A stretch of 64,000 bases of DNA from Hyphochytrium catenoides (lineage: Eukaryota; Protista; Hyphochytriomycota). Of this stretch, positions 52,111 through 62,900 are shown in pieces. A program made the position numbers and the translations under genes. Position 1 is the stretch's first letter, and each line of letters starts with the position of its first letter. The stretch is from contig FLMG01004575.1 of NCBI GenBank assembly GCA_900088475.1, positions 1 to 64,000 on the forward strand, read 5' to 3'. The notes under the pieces are model-generated. The model had not been told where the DNA came from and did no database searches. It saw nothing but the letters and a program-made list of their open reading frames with translations.

Positions 52111-53298
52111 TACAAAACTAGAGTAACTTTCACGAACATGTTCTTGGCCCATTGCACCCGTCACGTTTTTTATCCCTATGGAATAAGTTCGACAGCAAGT
52201 CTGCGGGTTTAGTGTTCGTAGAGGTCTCTCCATCTTATTGATTAGGTTACATAGGCAAGAAGACAGCCTAGCTGTATGGCACATGGCCGTGCGGACCAAG
52301 GACAGCCTTTTACCTGAGAGAGCCGCCGGGCGGATAGTCTTGACTCCCTCGAACTCACCTGCTCCCAGGAAGAAGCCTTTGAGTCAACTTATGACCTTTC
52401 AGCGAAGAGATTCTCGTTCTGTTCTTCTTCTCTCTCTTTCTTCCTTCCCTATTGCACTAGCAGACCTTATGGCTCTCAGCGTTCTCCTTGCTCCACCTTT
52501 GTCTTTGTGTACCTCAGGTAGATTGTCTTTGATAGTCCGTTGAGACTTCTTTACTCATGATACTCACTAATACACTTCTGAGAAAAGTTTGTAATCGATG
52601 CGCTGATGGTCCTTGCACCGCTTGGCTGAACTGGGCCTTTCGGCAGACTCTCGCCAATAGAAAAAGTCCTCTTCTACCTGGCTCTCCATCTCCTCCCTTA
52701 TATTAATAACAGTCTAGTACCCTCTCTCATGACACCACCCTCAGCCCTTATTAGGCGTTATAGAGGCTTTACTTCGAGTCTCTCTTCTGTTACTCGCTTT
52801 TGCTCTCTCTCCTTCCTCTCATTGCACTCAGAATCCTTGTAAAGGCCAGACGTGCTTTCTAGAAGAAGTTTGGCATCATGCTGATTTCTTTTTACCTAAA
52901 AAGTACCGTCATTTCTTGGTAGATGATCGCTCCATTCATGTGACCATGTGAGCCTTTGACCGTGAAATGTCGACGAAGCGTGAGGCTCTTCACACCGTAA
53001 TCATTGGTAAGTAGAGAATCATTATTGGGTTTTTTGATGTTTACAAGCAGGGATGGCAACCGAAGAGAGGGTGAGGAACCTCAATCGGTCATTTCCTAGC
53101 AATTTGTTGCTGGAACAGGATTCCTTATTTCTGGAACAAATGAGGGAGCTATTCCCCATCAAGCAGCGTATTATCCATAATAATATTGGCATGTTCTTGT
53201 TGTTGTGTCCTCCCAACTTTTTTGAATATTTCATTAGAACCATTCGAGAGATTGACCTAGAGAAACGTGGGAAATATTCCCATGAAAATTAATAAATC

Positions 53299-53313
53299 CG
53301 AACTTTCTGGAAG
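53299..53313 (+). promoter_or_regulatory. Heat-shock element (nGAAnnTTCnnGAAn) upstream of CPN10
   Basis: cGAActTTCtgGAAg is a perfect three-unit HSE about 225 bp before the CPN10 ATG. Further GAA/TTC half-sites lie at about 53110-53290. Confidence 0.7.
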
Positions 53314-53535
53314 GCCTCTGTTTCCTGTGCTGCTGTTGATGGTGGCGAGCGCTTCATGTCAACGCGGCAGTCGGCTCATCAAGCTCAAGATCAGAACTGC
53401 TGCCCAAGATCCTTTCTTGTCGCTGCAGATGGAGACAGCTCAGACCTTTTCTTTCTGAAACATCAACATACTGGGACCAAGAGGCCTCCATACACAGAGC
53501 AACTCACGTCGGTTTCCATTTTTGCTTATAAAATA

Positions 53536-54076
53536 ATGGTAAGTAGACTATATGCGGAGCTTGTAGTCGTTAAAGTTCATGGGCTCCTTGACTTCTATGG
53601 ACTATGTGAAGAGGGAACTCGTACTTATCTTGTCACTCTCCTTTCTACAGTCCACTCTTGCAAGAAGACTGATTCCTCTTGGGGACAGAGTGCTAGTCAA
53701 GCGTGTAGAGGCTGCGGCAAAGGTTAGGAGAACTCCGGTCTGAGAGTATGTTAACACCTGACTAACACTCACTCTAACTATACAAACAGACTGCTGGTGG
53801 CGTCTTCCTTCCAGATACAAAGAAAGAGCGCCAGAATGAAGGAGAGGTAGGGATCTGATCACAACTTCAGCGTTTTAATGACTTAGCCGGACTTTCCTAT
53901 AGGTAGTAGCCGTAGGTCCTGGTGCACGTTCAAAGGACGGCAATCTGATTCCTCCCTCCTGCCAAGTTGGAGACAAGGTTCTCTTGCCTGAGTACGGCGG
54001 AAGCCTCGTAAAAGTCGGAGAGACTGAGCTTCACCTTTTCCGTGATGAGGATATCCTAGCGAAGTTCGACAACTAA
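53536..54076 (+). CDS. CPN10: 10 kDa chaperonin (mitochondrial CPN10/HSP10, GroES family), 4 coding exons
   Basis: ATG|gtaag, then STLARRLIPLGDRVLVKRVEAAAK|TAGGVFLPDTKKERQNEGE|VVAVGPGARSKDGNLIPPSCQVGDKVLLPEYGGSLVKVGETELHLFRDEDILAKFDN*. Missed by the ORF track. Confidence 0.96.
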
Positions 54077-54275
54077 GCTACAAATGAAGCTATTTGCCAC
54101 AGCCGCGGACAAGCTGCTGTGCGTAGGTGTCGCAGACCCAATGAAACTCTCCACATAACCTTATCAATAGAAATAGTATGACTCTATCTGAGGATGTCAT
54201 CTCCAATTATACACTCTCAGCCAGTTTCTATGCTTAAGCTGAGATCAGCTCTGATCAGCTCTCATTAGGTTACTA

Positions 54276-57200
54276 TTAGTACAGCTCGTCCCAGTCCCTG
54301 TCCACTTCTCCATCAATAACAGGAGCCGGAGCAGCAGTCAGTGCTTCCATACCATGGTGTTCAAAAGAGGCAGTTGGTTCCTGAGGGATCTTTTGCTGAA
54401 TGACTTCGTCATCTTCATCCCAAGAGTCACGGTCTGCCTCATCGGAGACATCGCTCAGTGCAGAGTATTTCGATTTACTGACAAGGGGCGTCAACTGGTA
54501 AAGAGGCGGAGTGACTGTCAGGCGCTGATTTGCGTTGACAAATATATCCAGTAGACTCACTTTGGTTAGAGACTTACTCTCCCAACCCCGAGACTTGGGG
54601 ACCTGTGCAGCCTCAGCTTTTATAGTATCTTCTGGGGCAGGAGTTACTTTCTTTGGCAGCTCCCAGACGAGCTTTAAGTCCAAACTCGTGTCGCTTGTCG
54701 CATCCCGATATGATGGCTGACTGGAACCTAGTCGCATGGAGATACCTGAGAAAACTCTGCGTGCTTTTTCGACGGTTGATAGAATTACGCGGATGTTGTG
54801 AGCATCGAGGACTTCTACTTTACACTCCGCAGGCGATACATATCTAGAGTGAACGCCGTCAGGAAGCTGCCAATAGTGGAAAGAGATTAAATCGACGTAC
54901 TTAGATAAAAGCTCCATGGCTACTGTGCGATCTAGGGTTGGGCTCCAGCATCCATTGTAAATCTTGAAGGTTTTGCTGTTAGGACCCACACTACATTGAG
55001 TGAGATTAGTTTTGACTCTACCGCAAGTATAGCAAACAAAGCGTGCAGGTCTTACTCTGAACTCTGGGCTTGCTTGAAGGTAGAGTCATCACTAACCAAC
55101 CGCCCGTTGTCTCGGGAGATAGATTCTGAGAGCGAGGTCGAGCGAAGGACTGTCGAGAGGAGTTGAGGTGGGATGGTGCTAGCCTTTGTCTGCCAAAGGG
55201 GTGGTTGGTCAGATTACCTTGAACCTTCTGTTCTACTGCTGTACCAAAAGGATTGATTTATCTTACCCTATGCACGCAAATGTACCGCTTTGGTTCAAAG
55301 CCATAAGAGGCTGTACTGAGGCCGTAGTAAGTACAGAGCTCGTGAACAAACGCCCGCGTGGGGCGGTCCATGGCGGAGAAATTGAACCTGAGGAGAATGA
55401 GTCAATCGTCGTGCCAAAGAACTCAATCTGTTTGCCGGCCATTCAAAGACATGCGGAGACATACGTCAGATTCCTTGGGGTGAAGTCAAGTTTCAAAAAT
55501 TGGTCCAATCGTTTCTCTATTCTAGCCACCGTGGCTGGATTCGCAAGGCCAAACGCAATGAGCGCATCGGAGTACTTCACCGCCTGGCCTGGTTTATTCT
55601 CCTCAACCCCTAGAGCACTTGCCAGGCGTCTGTTTCGCTCCAGCTGTTTGCACTACGACAGGATGAGATATTAGTTGACGACTATATGTGAACCACACAC
55701 CTCAGGGTCAGACGCCTACCTCCTCATTACAAGGTAGTCCCCGACGTATGAGCTCCAGTCCTGCCTCCACCGAAGAGACATCAATGTCATCGTCAAATGC
55801 CGTCCGTCGGCCACAAGGACAGCGGAGTGACTTGAGTTTACTATGCGTGAGTGAATGAAAGCGATGGTTTAGGGAGTGAAACTAGTGACTTAGGGTTTCC
55901 GTAGGGGCATTGATATTGTTCTTGTAGGGATATGGACATACATGGTATATTCTCGCTGAGATGCAGCAGTAATGGTCCCTGGTGGGCGATTACTTGGAGC
56001 TAAAGAAGGATTCGGGAGGCTTGGGGGCAGCGAAGGAAAGTGAGCCTCCTGATTTGTCTCAATGCTGTGAGGCAAGTGGCTCATATCCAATGCCAATGGC
56101 TCCGGGGGCCTAGGGAAGGGCTAACCAGCACAATGATCAGTGACTAAGAATCTGTCCGCTACGCTCTGTCAAGTTAGTACTAATCCGACGGGAGGCTTAC
56201 CGTTGATAACCCTTCCTCTGAAGCTAGACCCGTGGCATCTCCTCTTCTGACTCTAAAGCCCACCTCCAAGTTCCTATCAATTCTAAGGTGAGGGTGTACT
56301 GAGGCCATGTGAGCCTTGTAGTCAATGATATTGCCGAACACGACAAACTTGCTTCGCAAACAGTCAGGCTCCTACATAGGAGAGATACTGTTAGGCACAN
56401 NNNNNNNNNNNNNNNNNNNNNNNNNNNNNNNNNNNNNNNNNNNNNNNNNNNNNNNNNNNNNNNNNTGCTCCAGCTCATTATAATCACGGTAGTACCGGTC
56501 TCTGACATTGTGCAGAGATTGACAGAGATGGCACTCGTAATGATCCCGGTGCAGGTGATCATACAGTTCATTGTTGCTATACCAGCGAGATCCACAGAAC
56601 CGACAAAGCGGATGTCCTGTACGAATCCAGCTTTCCGTCAGCACCTGTACAAGTAGTGCTGTTTCATTCGAACCTACCTTGAAAACCTTCTTCAGGATCG
56701 CCTTTCTTTTCGTGCCTTTCTAGAGCTTTTTTAGTAAAGAGAGCTTGCTCTGAAACAAATAGCTGGTCGAGAGCCGAGTCAGACAAAGAGGCCATCGCAG
56801 CTGTTCACGACTCACACTTACCATTTTGGACTTCAAACAAAGCTCGCAAAAGGAGAGTCCATGACCCTTGCCCAGATGAGCTTTATACGCTTTCAGCGAG
56901 AGGAAACTTTCGCCGCACTTGTCACCCCCTTTGCATTTGATCCCGCGCAGTTCTTGGACATAGGGAAGCCCCTTCTTGATCAAGAACATTTGGGAGTCCT
57001 CATCAAAGACATGGTTGGGGCCAATGCTATCTCCCCAGGACTCAAAGCTCTAGGAGCGGCCCACAGGCGTTAGTGCTTATAGTCTCCAAATATTTGACCA
57101 ATAGCACTGGATATCAATCCCCAAACATGCAAACAATGGCTCTGGATTTTTGTCTCAGGCTACAGCCGTAACTGCACGATTTTTTATGGACCCTCTTACC

Positions 57201-58459
57201 AGGCTAGACCTCAGAAACTATCTGATGCTTACCTCGTAGCTTTGGCTCTCATCTTCTATGCAAATCACCTTGTCCATTCGTGTCTTGCAGATTGCACAAT
57301 TCAGCTCTTTCATTAATTGTCTCATTCGAAGGACGCATAGACTGCAGCAACCCCGATGGTTGCACGCGCCTATAGTGTTGAAGGTTCTCACGTTGTCAAT
57401 CGTGGAACAGCAGATTAGACACGTAACTGCACCTTCTGCCTGTTGGCCTGAATATAGGTGGAAGCGATTCAGTCCATATCTAACGAGAAAGCAGCTACTC
57501 ACTATATCCTTACCTTCAAGATCTGCTTTATCCTTTCCCTCCTTTCTTTTGTAGGCCAGAGGCCGCTTTCTATCGTTTCGCTTCCTTTGTTGTCCGTCAC
57601 TCATGGCACCATACTTCTCCGTAAACGTTTCTTTGCTGGCCGCCTGGGGATCTGAGTTGGTTCCTGAGCTTCTTTCTGCGGTCACCTTAGCCGGGTCACG
57701 TCGACTTCCCTTGCGCTGGCTCTCCCGCGATTGTCGCGGCCGCCGCTGAAGGCCTCCAGCACTTGCGTCTAGCCGCTCAACGTTTCTCGTCGCCTCTCGA
57801 CTGTTCATCCGCTTGTCTGATTTTTCACCGTCATGGCGCTGACTTTCAGGGGCAGCAGCTGCACTTAGCCCCTCCGTATTAGTGAATGAGATGTACTGCT
57901 GTTGAGGACGATGAGGGCGCTGATTACGGCTAGCTGGAGACGGCCCTCGAACCGACGCATTGTTCGCTCCTTCCTCAGGGTGACGAGAGGAAGATGAGGA
58001 ACTATCTGCCAGGTGGTGCTGCTCCTTCTGCTTAGATTTAACGTACTTCTCCTTTGGTTTGTTCTTTAATAATACTTCTCCCTTTGGAGCTGTGCCGCGT
58101 GGCGGTTGTGAGGCAGCCAACATCACCTGTAAAGGCGCCATTGAGATGTTGGAGGTGCCTGTACCCAAGCTATCAGAAGCAAGAGAGGAGGTTAATTTGC
58201 CGTTGGCTGGCTGGAAAGCTTGATGTGAGTAGCGGCACTTATCACCGCTTCGACAACCGCTTCTGGACACGGGGTCGAAATGGCGGCAAACAGCCGTCCG
58301 CTTGGGTTTCGAAAGTTTGGATCTGGCTGGATGGGCAACGTCGCTCCCGCCTTGTCTCTCCCTATTTTCCTTTGGTTTTGACTCCTCACTACCTGATGGT
58401 AAGACAGCGACTGAGCTGGTTTGGGCGAAAACCCTTCCGTCGGGCTGCACGGTGTCCAT
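54276..58459 (-). CDS. ZNF598: ZNF598/Hel2-like RING E3 ligase with an N-terminal CCCH finger and a C-terminal NFX1-like R3H region
   Basis: CCCH: CRHFDPVSRSGCRSGDKCRYSH. RING: CLICC...GACNHRGCCSLCVLRMRQLMKELNCAICK. C2H2 array: HLGKGHGLSFCELCL, GHPLCRFCGSRWYSNNELYDHLHRDHYECHLC, YYRDYNELE. R3H: FSAMDRPTRAFVHELCTYYGLSTASYGFEPKR. Confidence 0.88.
56400..56465. other. Assembly gap (66 N) inside a ZNF598 exon
   Basis: Run of N. The length is a multiple of 3, so the C2H2 reading frame is preserved across it. Confidence 0.99.
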
Positions 58460-59274
58460 CTTCAGCAGCAGCAAGGACGAGGAGATCTGAAGCCCAGAGC
58501 CTTAGGAAGGCCTTGTAGACCTCTAAACCATCCTTTTCCCCCGCCAGAAATGAACGAAATAAAGGAGATGGGAGGAAGGAAGAGGAACGTGAGAGAGAAC
58601 GAGCGAAGAAGAGAGAACCGCACCGCCTGCCCCTACACTGATTGCTCGGAGAAACTGCTGATTGATGTTCGCAGCCGCAAGCCCCGAACGGAGTGATTGT
58701 GCTGCTTTATTTGCTGTGGTGACTCCTACTGTGCAGTGAGTTCGGAATCCGCATTGTCCGATTCTGATCGGAAGAACAAACCCAAGCAAATCCCTTCACA
58801 GTCATCAAGTCGTGCGGGAGTGATAACTAGGATAAGATGTTGATCTATCCTCACACAGCTTGGTTGGGCAAACTCACTACAGCGTTATCCACACATACAA
58901 AATCACCCCTTCCATTATTATGAATTCACTGAGGTTTATCAGCGATCCGAATGACTAATGCTCTTCATCAAGCGGTTTGGTTGAGTGGCGGACCAGCAGG
59001 CGGGACAACAGCGAAGGGAAGCGGAAGGAAAGAGGAGAGCTCGCTCTCTTTATGACTCTGGTACGGAGCTTCCCTCAGGGAACTGATGATCTCTTCCATG
59101 CTTCAGAGACTTCCGATGCCATGATACACTATTGAGGGCAAGACGACTCCAGATATCAGCTAGCTCGTAGACTTGCTTGAACAGCAGGTGATCGCCAAGA
59201 ACGCAGGGGGCAAAAGATAAAGCAGGAGGGACGGAAAGCCAGGGCAGTTCGGAACAAATACTGACGATAAGGGA

Positions 59275-59855
59275 ATGTCTGTGACAACCTCTGCTGCGCC
59301 TTTATGGCGTGCCCTTGCTTTCAACAAGCAGACTCGCAGAGGGAGAATCCTTCGTGTCACTCAAGAGCACTACCTGAGAGACGACATCGGCTGTTGCTCC
59401 GAGCTCTGTTTAATCTGTCCTCCGCCTCAACCGCGAGAGGATGTAGAGCCAACTCTCCTCGGAAAGAGGTAATACTGCCACCAGTGATAAGGGAAAGGTC
59501 GTCTTTGCATCTTCTAACCTGCCTTCCATGGTACTCGCTTCTCACCAGTCCGGACGGTAACCGGTATCTTGTACTCGACACCAACACGTTCCTGCATCAG
59601 ATGGACCTATTAGAAAATGCTGTGGGAGCTATTGATAACGTCATTGTAACTCAGACAGTGATGGAGGAAGTAAAGCATAGGAACATCAGCCTTTATAGGA
59701 GGTTATACGCCCTAGTGAAGGTACTGAGAGACGGTGAAACCCGGAAGGATGGGTAATACCTGTCGTCGATAGCTGGCACTATGTCTTCCCGCTATCAATC
59801 CTACGGGTCACCTCTCCATGCCGGTTAGCTTACGGTCTTCTGTTATCTCTCCTTT

Positions 59856-59924
<69 letters not shown>

Positions 59925-62900
59925 CTCTCTCTCTCACCTTGGGCTTTTCCTGCAGAATCCATCCCGTCATTTCGTCATCTTCGCCAACAAGCATCACCAG
60001 AACACATTCGGTATGTCAGAGACCTCCTCGCCGCTGTACTAGTCTATGATGGTTACGTTATCGCCCCAAACGCCACGCTTCTCCACGCTCAAAAGAGTCA
60101 CCGGGTTACCTCACTTTCTGGATTAACCATGTCGATCAACTAACAAGCTGCTTGTCTCCTGCTACTTAGTGGATAGACGGCGAGGAGAGACTGCAAACGA
60201 CTACAATGATCGGGCGATCAGAAAGGTTGTCTCCTGGTACAAGGACCATCTGTCGCAGAGTAAAAAGCCGAACCTCTCAGTAGTATTAGTAACGAATGAT
60301 GCTGCGAATAAGCAGCAAGCCAAGATACAAGGTTTACAAGCAGTTACCATCCAAGAGCTGGTCGGTGGATTTAAAGACAGATATCCCGAACTCTCAGAGT
60401 TGGTGGCGCAACCAAATGACGGGGATAGTGTGGGTGAGGTTGACGCTGTTCCCCGGCCCACTGCGAGCAACGTTAAGAACCAGGGCCAGAAAAAGGGTTC
60501 CAGAGAAGGTCCAAAGGGATCACTTTACCCAGAGTACCTTCCGGATGATCAACTGAACATAGGCCTTAAGGCTGGAAGATACTTCAAGGTGTGTTTTTCC
60601 AGAAAGCTGAACTAGGGCCTCCTCCCTTCAAGCTCATGACAAAAAATCTCACACCTCTAGCCTTCACAAATTGCCTCAGATTAGCCCTTAGGACCTCTAC
60701 TATGAACCTCTTCCTGCTTTGTCTTAGCTTATTACGACTGATTTAGGCCTAATCTATCTGTAGGGTACTCTCCGCTGCTCGCGGGACAATTGGCAAAGTG
60801 CTTATGTCGTAGTCGGAGCAACCGGCGGAGACCGAGTGGGGGTCACTATTCAGGTAAACAGAACGTTACGCGCTTATCAGCCTTGCCTTGCCTTTGTTAC
60901 TGATTAATCTTCTGTACGCCAGGGGCGAGAGAGAATAAATCGTGCCATTGATGGCGACATCGTGGCTATTGAGATCCTTCCTCAGATGGAATGGGGAAGG
61001 GAAGGAACCCCGAAAGCTCCAAAGCTTCTTGCCAAGAGCGACGCAGAGGGTGAGAGGAAGTAGGATAGGACTGACCCCTGTGTGCGCCTTCTAAGACGTG
61101 ACTCCTCCAGTTGAAGGCACTGATACACGGGAGGAAAAGGCCAATGCAGAAATAGCTGATATTGTAAACATCAGCGATGAGACGTGTAAGAGACTGAGAA
61201 TCGACGAGATAATATAGTTCTTCCCGCGAATTGGTCTAACCCCATTCCTCACCTACAACAATTCCAGCCACCACAACGGAGAAGTCATTAGGCACTAAAC
61301 CTTGTGGCAAAGTTGTTGGCGTCCTAAAGAGGAATTGGCGCAGCCTTTGCGGTTCAATCGAGCCGGTTGATGGGCCAGCAGTTAGCAGCTACTCTTTGTT
61401 CGTACCAGTAGATCGTAAGGTGAGCAACTCTTTCTGAGATCTAGGTCGACTGTTTGCTTTGAAGCAATTAACTCTGCTTAAAGAACCTAGGTTTCTCCCC
61501 CATTACTCTATGTAATCTCCGTCCCATACACACCTCCTTGCTCTGACTGGAGAAATGGTCCTTCCTCATATTCATAAATACCGGCAGATCCCTAAGATCA
61601 AGATACTGACGAGACAGCGGGATGCTCTACTGAACAAGCGCATCATGGTTACCATTGACGGATGGCCAACAAACAGTGGATTTCCCATAGGGCATTACGT
61701 TAAAACGCTCGGAGACATCGGGGATAAGGACACAGAGACGAAAGTGATCCTTTTGGAGCACCACATACCCACTGAGGAGTTTTCGCCGAAGGTACGGCAC
61801 GGACAAGACGTGGTTTTGGCGAGTGGGAGAGCATTTTTACGGTTAAAGAGGATTACTAGATACGAAGGGAGTCTTCTTTGCCTACTCCATGTGGGCAAAC
61901 GGGGGTGTCCAACTGTTGGAAGAAATATTTGAGTCGAGAAAAGACAGTGATGTACCAATGTCTTACCCCGATGATAGGTTATTGCGTGTCTACCACCATC
62001 TAACTGGGTAGTTACGGAAGAAAACTCGAAGGGCAGAAGAGACTTGCGCCATCTACCTGTGATGAGCATCGACCCGCCAGGATGCAAGGATATTGACGAC
62101 GCCTTGCATGTCATCAAACTGGACAATGGAAACTATCAGGTAGAGCTCTATTAGTTCTGGCTGTTTGTAGCTTGCCTACACTATGTTGCCTAGTGGCCTG
62201 GCCATGCAGTAATGATCGGAGTTAACCCATTCGATAATATTCTCTCATGTTCACTGTCAATGCCAACAACAGGTGGGGGTTCACATTGCAGACGTGACAC
62301 ACTTCGTCGCCGCAGGTTCAGCGATGGACCTTGAAGCTGCAAATCGAGGCACTTCGACCTACCTCGTGGAACGGCGTCTTGACATGTTACCTGGACTTCT
62401 GACGACGGACATATGCTCTCTAAGGTGAGAAGTGACTCTCACCAATCATCATGCGGGTGGTAAAATCAAGCCAATCAAAAAGGGGTCTCGGGTAGCAGTC
62501 AGTTGCATGCATGGAAGGTGACCGCACTATTTGGTGGGGTGGCGGAGGGTACTATCAACCACTGCGCCGTAAATGGGGTTAAACTGCCGAAAACGCAAGA
62601 AGCGAGTACGCTAGGTGCTGACTGAGCTTGACTGGCAGGGAAGACTAGCTAACCTTCACTTTTGACAGGGGTGGTATCGACCGCTTTGCCTTCTCAGTTG
62701 TCTGGGAGATCTCTCCTGCCATCGAGATTGTATCGGTAGAGTTTTTCAAAAGTATCATCCATTCGGTAGCCGCGATGTCATACCAGGACGCACAGGATCT
62801 TCTGGATAGCGACAGAAAAGATGTCAAGGTGGGTGAGGTGGGCACAGAAATAAAGATTTTCCCAGGGTCATGTGACCTGATAAGCTGAGTACTCTTGCCA

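Follow-up and report, generated by a model that had tools for sequence, protein, structure and literature searches.

Collided ribosomes are sensed by an E3 ligase, ZNF598 in animals or Hel2 in yeast. Fap1, a member of the NFX1 family of NF-X1-finger RING ligases, acts during 18S non-functional rRNA decay, where its targets are stalled 80S ribosomes. To our knowledge, ZNF598/Hel2 of animals and yeast has no R3H domain. A locus of the soil hyphochytrid Hyphochytrium catenoides raises the question of whether modules of both ligases are joined in one polypeptide, as the original prediction for this DNA had proposed. In the present study, we examined the locus in the window, that is, the whole 64,000-nt stretch of contig FLMG01004575.1 that was analysed, and weighed the proposal against the other explanations of the same sequence.

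The gene model and the ZNF598-like half

All of the peptide strings quoted in the original prediction were located on the minus strand of the window: RCPCGRR...GLPCNEE in exon 8, CKQLERNRRLASALG...YSDALIAFGLANPATVARIEKRLDQFL in exon 9, FSAMDRPTRAFVHELCTYYGLSTASYGFEPKR in exon 10, and VEVLDAHNIRVILSTVEKARRV in 54843-54561. The DNA itself shows the domains and their collinearity and yields a consistent splicing model. An open frame leads from the ATG at 58459 to the TAA at 54278-54276 with consistent phases at all 11 core junctions. All the modelled introns (57-183 nt) are of the GT...AG type. A CTRAY-like branch site precedes the AG by 14-21 nt in most of them; intron 7 has no clear one there. 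The locus is probably a single minus-strand gene with 12-14 exons (58459 to 54276), and its product would be a RING ubiquitin ligase about 1,050 residues long. The features of its 5' part are as follows.

57514..58459, minus strand: exon 1, with the start ATG at 58459 and a long low-complexity N-terminus
58223..58291, minus strand: probable CCCH finger within exon 1, C-x10-C-x5-C-x3-H, with the Cys/His spacing read from the sequence
57448..57513, minus strand: intron 1, 66 nt, in frame, which could also be read through; signals GTAAGG...CTGAA...TTCAG
57233..57447, minus strand: exon 2, C3HC4 RING finger at about 57427-57254
56822..57049, minus strand: exon 3, C2H2 finger 1 and the beginning of finger 2
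56678..56762, minus strand: exon 4, finger-array linker ...KGDPEEGFQ, phase compatible
56466..56616, minus strand: exon 5, C2H2 finger 3 and the first half of finger 4, entering the gap
56400..56465, no strand: assembly gap of 66 N, an estimated length; the sole run of N in 53000-60000
56201..56371, minus strand: exon 6, terminal part of the ZNF598-type finger array

The ATG at 58459 is the first ATG of a stop-free piece of 427 codons (58501-57221). The Pfam matches of the CCCH finger were weak and under the cut-off (zf-CCCH_4, E 0.0015; Torus, E 0.0024). The RING families matched include zf-C3HC4_3 and, as the best, RING_ZNF598 (PF25447), and the gene contains no other RING. The RING_ZNF598 match (E 1.1e-5) lies on one exon, covers profile positions 4-56 of 90, and scores 26.1 bits against a curated cut-off of 27, which is 0.9 bits short.

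The frame of exon 3 opens precisely at the acceptor, with a TAG immediately 5' of it. The exon matched zf-C2H2_4 weakly, and its fingers are, in our reading, collinear with the ZNF598 finger array. The signature GDP..G-HPLC-x-FC, which we take to be typical of the ZNF598 family, crosses the exon 4/5 junction. Residues 25-49 of exon 5 correspond to positions 2-26 of zf-C2H2_13 (PF23230; 13.2 bits) and residues 3-21 of exon 6 to its positions 40-58 (E 0.008, 16.7 bits); neither half reaches the cut-off of 27, since the gap and an intron divide the unit. Exon 5 also matched zf-C2H2_4, and its look-alike cluster in the ESM Atlas carries PF23230, a family that is presumably specific to ZNF598. Pfam gave no PAH_ZNF598 domain on any exon (E<=1 on exons 7-12), and a PDB sequence search with exons 2, 3, and 5 returned no ZNF598/Hel2 chain. 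With RING_ZNF598 as the top RING family and zf-C2H2_13 on both sides of the gap, the sequence supports a ZNF598-type N-half, probably a ZNF598/Hel2-like core composed of a RING and about five C2H2 fingers.

The gap falls inside one zinc-finger unit, and positions 27-39 of zf-C2H2_13 are absent between exons 5 and 6. From the split match, it hides the donor (5' part) of intron 5 and about 11 residues of finger 4, presumably the H-x3-5-H half in about 34 nt ahead of a GT. As an in-frame TAG stands directly 5' of 56371, entry into exon 6 must use the acceptor at 56372. Continuity across the gap is plausible, the frame there not being readable from the sequence.

The C-terminal cassette and the R3H domain

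The C-terminal half was compared with natural NFX1/Fap1 genes retrieved from metagenomes. Its domains are encoded by three exons.

55720..55840, minus strand: exon 8, NFX1-type half-finger from LRCPCGRRTA to LPCNEE
55465..55652, minus strand: exon 9, C-KQ-LERNRRLA-S-AL helix and pre-R3H helices (KYSDALIAF...)
55267..55387, minus strand: exon 10, R3H domain core (R-AFV-H)

In natural NFX1 genes, the motif L-x-C-[ND]-[DE]-EC-x-x-LERN-[RK]-[RK]-LA-x-AL is located about 60 residues N-terminal of the R3H domain, which agrees with its assignment to the NFX1/Fap1 C-terminus in the original prediction. Conservation of this motif extends to metazoan-type loci and, among the 120 fungal Fap1/NFX1 proteins listed, to about 100. 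Of the fetched loci, 10 have the motif followed by a readable R3H domain, and each of these is a true NFX1 gene; the remaining 44 are unrelated. In the present gene it reads LPCNEE followed by CKQLERNRRLASAL, interrupted at the exon 8/9 junction.

The expected alignment of the C-terminal part to NFX1 and R3H profiles was obtained. In hhalign against the NFX1/Fap1 cassette profile, exon 8 occupied columns 21-53 (E 7.4e-4, probability 26%), exon 9 columns 54-105 (E 4e-8, probability 95%; 49 columns aligned, including KYSDAL / IPYS..TL), and exon 10 columns 118-155, the R3H columns of the profile (E 2.5e-8). The three exons are collinear on successive profile columns with agreeing spacing, and the exon 8/9 junction coincides exactly with the boundary of columns 53/54. 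Among the six-frame translations of the window, the pieces with exons 9 and 10 were the sole matches to an HMM of NFX1 C-termini. Exon 9 gave E 8e-7 among the 1760 six-frame pieces with the HMM of 60 NFX1/Fap1 C-termini, although the NFX1 sequences had been fished with a pattern from this gene and part of this score therefore arises by construction. Exon 8 matched the metazoan-type NFX1 locus L014 in blastp-short (E 0.001). Exon 9 was 40.6% identical to the NFX1 locus L045 in tblastn, and exon 10 was 48.6% identical to the R3H domain of the same locus. By Pfam, the R3H domain (PF01424) of exon 10 scored 41.6 bits (E 1.3e-10) against a cut-off of 26.8.

A PDB sequence search at E<=1 with exon 10 gave two chains, an unrelated ligase and Fap1 (weak, E 0.98), the latter being the sole R3H chain; the same kind of search with exons 8 and 9 gave no match. 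NF-X1-type zinc fingers (PF01422), which the fetched natural NFX1 proteins have, were found on none of the exons by Pfam, and no NFX1-type PHD/RING was found in the gene.

These results would also have to be accounted for if the C-half were an ordinary R3H region that resembled NFX1 through a chance short motif and not through common descent. In line with such an origin, residues 13-62 of exon 9, from which the conserved motif is removed, had no significant BLAST match to the NFX1 loci, a PDB search with exon 9 misses yeast Fap1 at thresholds up to E<=10, the hhalign probability of exon 8 is 26%, and no similarity extends beyond the R3H domain. However, a chance motif would not be expected to place three successive exons on successive profile columns with matching spacing, or to extend over 49 columns of exon 9. 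The finding that all 10 loci with the motif and a readable R3H domain are true NFX1 genes, and the return of Fap1 but no other R3H chain by exon 10, also speak against it, and we consider this explanation highly improbable. The sequence instead supports the presence of the NFX1/Fap1 C-terminal cassette, namely the half-finger, the LPCNEEC-x-x-LERNRRLA helix, two helices, and the R3H domain.

The region after the R3H domain contains the following features.

55056..55189, minus strand: exon 11, phase compatible, no recognisable domain
54276..54990, minus strand: exon 12, containing the stop TAA at 54278-54276
54900-54844 and 54560-54495, minus strand: two probable in-frame introns in exon 12, with signals read from the sequence
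within 54843-54561, minus strand: candidate RRM-like segment VEVLDAHNIRVILSTVEKARRV in exon 12

Exon 11 had no match in Pfam or in hhalign, and exon 12, whose acidic tail terminates in DRDWDELY, had none in Pfam. The RRM-like segment that had been suspected here was not borne out: Pfam gave no match, hhalign against the fungal Fap1 tail gave a probability of 0.1%, and the AlphaFold model of the putative fold was unusable (pLDDT 37). A likeness of the post-R3H region to the fungal Fap1 tail that had been noticed by eye (YN...VE.L domain, GW, F/YSAL, DDWE) was likewise unsupported, as the HMM gave no match and the hhalign probability was the 0.1% mentioned above. The terminal PAPV..DW motif gave E 0.11 against the same tail in blastp-short.

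The junction between the halves

Two features lie here, intron 6, the junction that decides between one gene and two, and the exon after it.

56121..56200, minus strand: intron 6, 80 nt, GTAAGC donor
55942..56120, minus strand: exon 7, Pro-rich linker without a Pfam family

By splice-phase logic, we infer that the two halves quite probably share a single transcript. The same DNA could be read as two neighbours on the same strand, a Hel2-like ligase ending at 56180 and a truncated NFX1-derived R3H protein starting from the ATG at 56084. Read-through past the donor at 56200 indeed reaches a stop at 56180, 7 codons past it, and the ATG in exon 7, which is in frame and has a purine at -3, would be the sole possible start of a separate downstream gene. 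A frame-compatible intron-like bridge at this site occurs by chance in 8% of shuffles, a figure that we counted for this reading and, being low, also for one gene, and yeast Hel2 is likewise short, with only about 640 residues. However, the ATG lies 96 nt past the read-through stop, and a terminator and a promoter would need to fit in this spacer. With the gene count of 18,481 and a genome size that we take to be about 65 Mb, the mean gene spacing in H. catenoides is of kilobase order; we therefore counted the 96-nt distance for one gene. The donor, the branch (CTGAT, 17 nt upstream of TTAG), and the acceptor of intron 6 resemble those of the other introns. Exon 8, whose stop-free piece lacks a Met, has to be joined to exon 7 by splicing, and a downstream product that opened with the Pro-rich linker and then half of a zinc finger would be odd on its own. 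We thus regard two separate genes as unlikely and retain the single gene.

Another explanation is that the locus is an unexpressed, decaying duplicate (an NFX1 fragment behind a ZNF598 copy) or a mis-joined scaffold. The assembly gap lies within the gene, and two of its ORFs, looked up as exact sequences, were absent from the protein collection. A phmmer search with exon 9 against 1.84 billion proteins gave 0 matches at E<=0.001, a result that excludes no more than close relatives, since a query of 62 residues requires, by a rough estimate, about 41 bits. Against this, every exon is open with the phase kept at all 11 core junctions, none of the key Cys/His residues is lost, the R-x3-H motif is preserved, and the last exon is a stop-free piece of 269 codons. 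The sequence from exon 6, with its ZNF598-type finger, to the NFX1-type exons 8-10 is uninterrupted and independent of the gap. A relic or an artefact is accordingly very unlikely, and we proceed with a probable single gene.

Searches with exons 9 and 5 found no orthologue with the same architecture; a metagenome scan with exon 5 peptides gave no match, and a word search using the RING region gave no candidate. The ESM Atlas look-alikes of exons 10 and 5 were domain fragments only, and uninformative on architecture. A ZNF598 domain was absent from the best 120 relatives of a fungal Fap1 cassette. Among publications naming ZNF598 together with R3H or NFX1, no such architecture was apparent from the titles and abstracts. 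The gene is probably a new combination of known domains.

Possible function and comparison with known systems

The R3H fold binds single-stranded nucleic acid. In a fold search with an AlphaFold model of a natural Fap1 cassette, 188 columns were matched to Fap1 as it stands in 7zw0, the Fap1-80S structure (E 1e-11), and the cassette therefore belongs to the ordered, ribosome-bound Fap1. Hel2/ZNF598 and Fap1 are the two RING ligases that distinguish collided from individually stalled ribosomes, and Fap1 binds the 40S subunit together with the mRNA at the sites of entry and exit (PMC9846516, PMC9953336). The mRNA-level effects of NFX1-123 require its R3H domain (PMC8067315).

For the present protein, the following mechanism, with its ribosome binding and its substrates, is an inference. 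The RING would recruit an E2, as in RING E3 ligases, and the C2H2 array may attach to the 40S subunit in the manner of Hel2/ZNF598. The R3H cassette, which appears to occupy the place of the usual, here undetected, ZNF598 C-terminus, could keep single-stranded RNA, in the simplest case mRNA, bound at the ribosome. In this way, the ligase would be anchored to stalled mRNA-ribosome complexes or gain selectivity for them. It is conceivable, and we suggest it only tentatively, that this hyphochytrid ligase fuses the collision-sensing core of Hel2/ZNF598 with a portable RNA-/40S-binding cassette of Fap1, so that one enzyme reads both collision and mRNA occupancy. If true, the C-terminal cassette of Fap1 would be a ribosome-targeting module in its own right. 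A natural chimera, if real, would mean that the Fap1/NFX1 R3H cassette is able to function apart from the NF-X1 fingers, and it would offer a direct handle on the contribution of the cassette to ribosome recognition.

The R3H fold is shared with IGHMBP2/Smubp-2, PARN, R3HDM/encore, SPAG7, and bacterial Jag/KhpB, whose structures rank after Fap1 in the fold search with the natural Fap1 cassette. However, none of their chains was matched by exon 10 in the PDB sequence search; we know of no NFX1-type motif helix upstream of R3H in these proteins. Like ZNF598/Hel2, the protein probably has an N-terminal C3HC4 RING of this type, with RING_ZNF598 as the best family, followed by about five C2H2 fingers including zf-C2H2_13, and the domain order and spacing of this half are presumably collinear with the family. 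Unlike ZNF598/Hel2, it shows about 300 low-complexity residues and an additional, probable CCCH finger N-terminal of this core, PAH_ZNF598 is undetected, and the C-half has the NFX1-type cassette with R3H. It differs from NFX1/Fap1 in having neither the PF01422 fingers nor the NFX1-type PHD/RING, and its post-R3H region has no significant similarity to the fungal Fap1 tail. As in NFX1, NFXL1, shuttle craft, and yeast Fap1, the half-finger, the L-x-C-N-EEC-x-x-LERNRRLA-x-AL helix, the pre-R3H helices, and the R3H domain follow one another in equal order and spacing.

Gene model and its continuity

We read the minus strand of 59000-53800, and the exon limits were set by script. Every peptide quoted in the original prediction was found on this strand, by sequence reading and with the exon script, and the following model was obtained.

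Gene model of the putative chimera gene
58459-57514, minus strand, exon 1
57447-57233, minus strand, exon 2
57049-56822, minus strand, exon 3
56762-56678, minus strand, exon 4
56616-56466, minus strand, exon 5
56400-56465, assembly gap (N run)
56371-56201, minus strand, exon 6
56120-55942, minus strand, exon 7
55840-55720, minus strand, exon 8
55652-55465, minus strand, exon 9
55387-55267, minus strand, exon 10
55189-55056, minus strand, exon 11
54990-54276, minus strand, exon 12

The introns (57-183 nt) have GT...AG ends throughout, and in most of them a CTRAY-like branch site lies 14-21 nt upstream of the AG; intron 7 has no clear one within this range. As the phases are consistent at every exon junction, a single frame runs from the ATG at 58459 to the TAA at 54278-54276. 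Three in-frame introns (57513-57448, 54900-54844, and 54560-54495) can also be read through. After splicing, the predicted protein would be about 1,042 residues long, with about 11 more concealed by the gap. A chaperonin-10 (GroES/Cpn10) gene (last exon 53903-54076, plus strand; Pfam E 3.5e-13) is convergent with the chimera gene, the stop codons being about 200 nt apart, and a divergent PIN_4 ORF (59304-59753, plus strand; E 1.2e-6), about 800 nt away, possibly encodes the N-terminus of a Dis3/Rrp44-like nuclease.

Exon 8 lies in a stop-free piece lacking any Met and so has to be joined to exon 7 by splicing. The only alternative to one gene is a second gene starting from the ATG at 56084, 96 nt past the stop at 56180, which is reached when the intron 6 donor is read through. 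A frame-compatible intron-like bridge appeared in 8% of 5,000 shuffles of this spacer, giving a likelihood ratio of about 12 in favor of one gene. The H. catenoides genome is about 65 Mb with a gene count of 18,481, which suggests intergenic spacers of kilobase order. Judging from the sequence, the exons quite probably form one gene.

The gap is the sole N run in the gene region (53000-60000). Pfam zf-C2H2_13 matched residues 25-49 of exon 5 (profile positions 2-26) and residues 3-21 of exon 6 (positions 40-58), so that the gap lies within one zinc-finger unit, and about 11 residues and one intron donor are absent from the assembly. Because a TAG is in frame immediately upstream of 56371, entry into exon 6 must use the acceptor at 56372. 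By this reading the two flanks belong together, and the frame across the gap is predicted. No break separates exon 6, which is ZNF598-type, from the NFX1-type exons; thus, the chimera is independent of the scaffold join.

The ZNF598-type N-half

All searches were run exon by exon. The top RING family in Pfam for exon 2 was RING_ZNF598 (E 1.1e-5, 26.1 bits vs the cut-off of 27), and weak generic C2H2 matches accompanied the split zf-C2H2_13. PAH_ZNF598 had no Pfam match on any exon after the N-half, and a PDB sequence search with exons 2, 3, and 5 matched no ZNF598/Hel2 chain. Near the N-terminus there is a probable CCCH finger (58223-58291, minus strand; C-x10-C-x5-C-x3-H; zf-CCCH_4 E 0.0015, the Pfam matches being under the cut-offs), which to our knowledge is not a feature of the ZNF598 family, followed by about 250 low-complexity residues. 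The Pfam results and the layout, which we take to be collinear with that of the family, support a probable assignment of the N-half to ZNF598/Hel2, as originally proposed.

The NFX1/Fap1-type cassette and the region after R3H

Exon 10 encodes an R3H domain above the Pfam cut-off (41.6 vs 26.8 bits). Exon 9 alone had no match at E<=0.001 among 1.84 billion proteins and no PDB match in a sequence search. A scan of JGI metagenome contigs for EEC..LER..RLA, written as a degenerate DNA pattern, gave 54 loci. In 10 of them (L007, L012, L014, L016, L017, L025, L030, L043, L045, and L051) the motif was followed by R3H, and all 10 were true NFX1 genes, in which NF-X1 fingers lie upstream; the other 44 were unrelated. 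When the L007 copy of the cassette (in this family a half-finger, the motif helix, pre-R3H helices, and R3H) was used for a word search, 597 proteins matched. The 120 listed were all fungal and, where the source gives a name, FKBP12-associated protein or NF-X1; most had PF01422 and PF01424 together, and some shorter gene models had PF01424 alone. About 100 of the 120 keep L-x-C-[ND]-[DE]-EC-A-R-LERNR-[KR]-LA-x-AL, and the corresponding stretch in the chimera gene is LPCNEE, then CKQLERNRRLASAL.

Of the 1,760 pieces that a six-frame translation of the window gives, an HMM built from 60 NFX1/Fap1 C-termini matched only those of exon 10 (E 7e-8) and exon 9 (E 8e-7). In hhalign against a 23-sequence cassette profile, exon 8 occupied columns 21-53 (E 7.4e-4), exon 9 columns 54-105 (E 4e-8, probability 95%), and exon 10 columns 118-155 (E 2.5e-8, probability 95%), consecutively and collinearly, with a seamless junction between exons 8 and 9. 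The pattern used to collect the family was derived from the chimera gene itself, and the exon 9 tail with the motif cut away had no significant BLAST match to the NFX1 loci. Independent of this pattern are the coherence of the family, the conservation of the motif, and the same motif-to-R3H distance. The collinearity and the R3H score bear out the proposed NFX1/Fap1-type C-terminus.

The nearest natural match to exons 9 (40.6% identity) and 10 (48.6%) is a metagenomic NFX1 (L045, 3213-3898, plus strand), in which, too, an intron separates the pre-R3H helices from the R3H core, a few residues off the position in the chimera gene. In two lichen-fungus proteins (P0076 and P0081), the R3H region of Fap1 occurs together with NmrA-type reductase domains (PF05368, PF13460, and PF03435); both proteins are most likely merged gene models.

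The RRM-like segment that had been proposed after R3H was not upheld: it had no Pfam match, and its AlphaFold model had a pLDDT of 37. A likeness of this region to the fungal Fap1 tail, apparent by eye, was unconfirmed in every test (HMM, hhalign, and blastp-short). Fungal Fap1 ends in VVDDWE, with D-W-E invariant in our alignment of Fap1 C-termini, metazoan-type NFX1 loci (L014, L017, and L045) terminate in IDYFDD, and the chimera gene ends (54279-54494, minus strand) in ...DRDSWDEDDE...VDRDWDELY. This acidic-aromatic ending may be a short linear motif common to NFX1 proteins and the chimera (blastp-short E 0.11, not significant).

Possible role in comparison with Fap1

With a RING, a C2H2 array, and R3H plus the NFX1-type cassette seen in the gene, the chimera protein would be a ribosome-associated ligase, in which the R3H cassette might give a Hel2-like core an added contact with mRNA or the 40S subunit. 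For a natural Fap1 cassette, the AlphaFold model (pLDDT 76) matched the chain of Fap1 in the Fap1-80S complex 7zw0 (188 columns, E 1e-11), indicating that the cassette in Fap1 lies in the ordered, ribosome-bound part. The mRNA-level effects of NFX1-123 depend on R3H (PMC8067315), and, according to reviews, Fap1 wraps the 40S subunit and contacts the mRNA at its sites of entry and exit (PMC9953336, PMC9846516).
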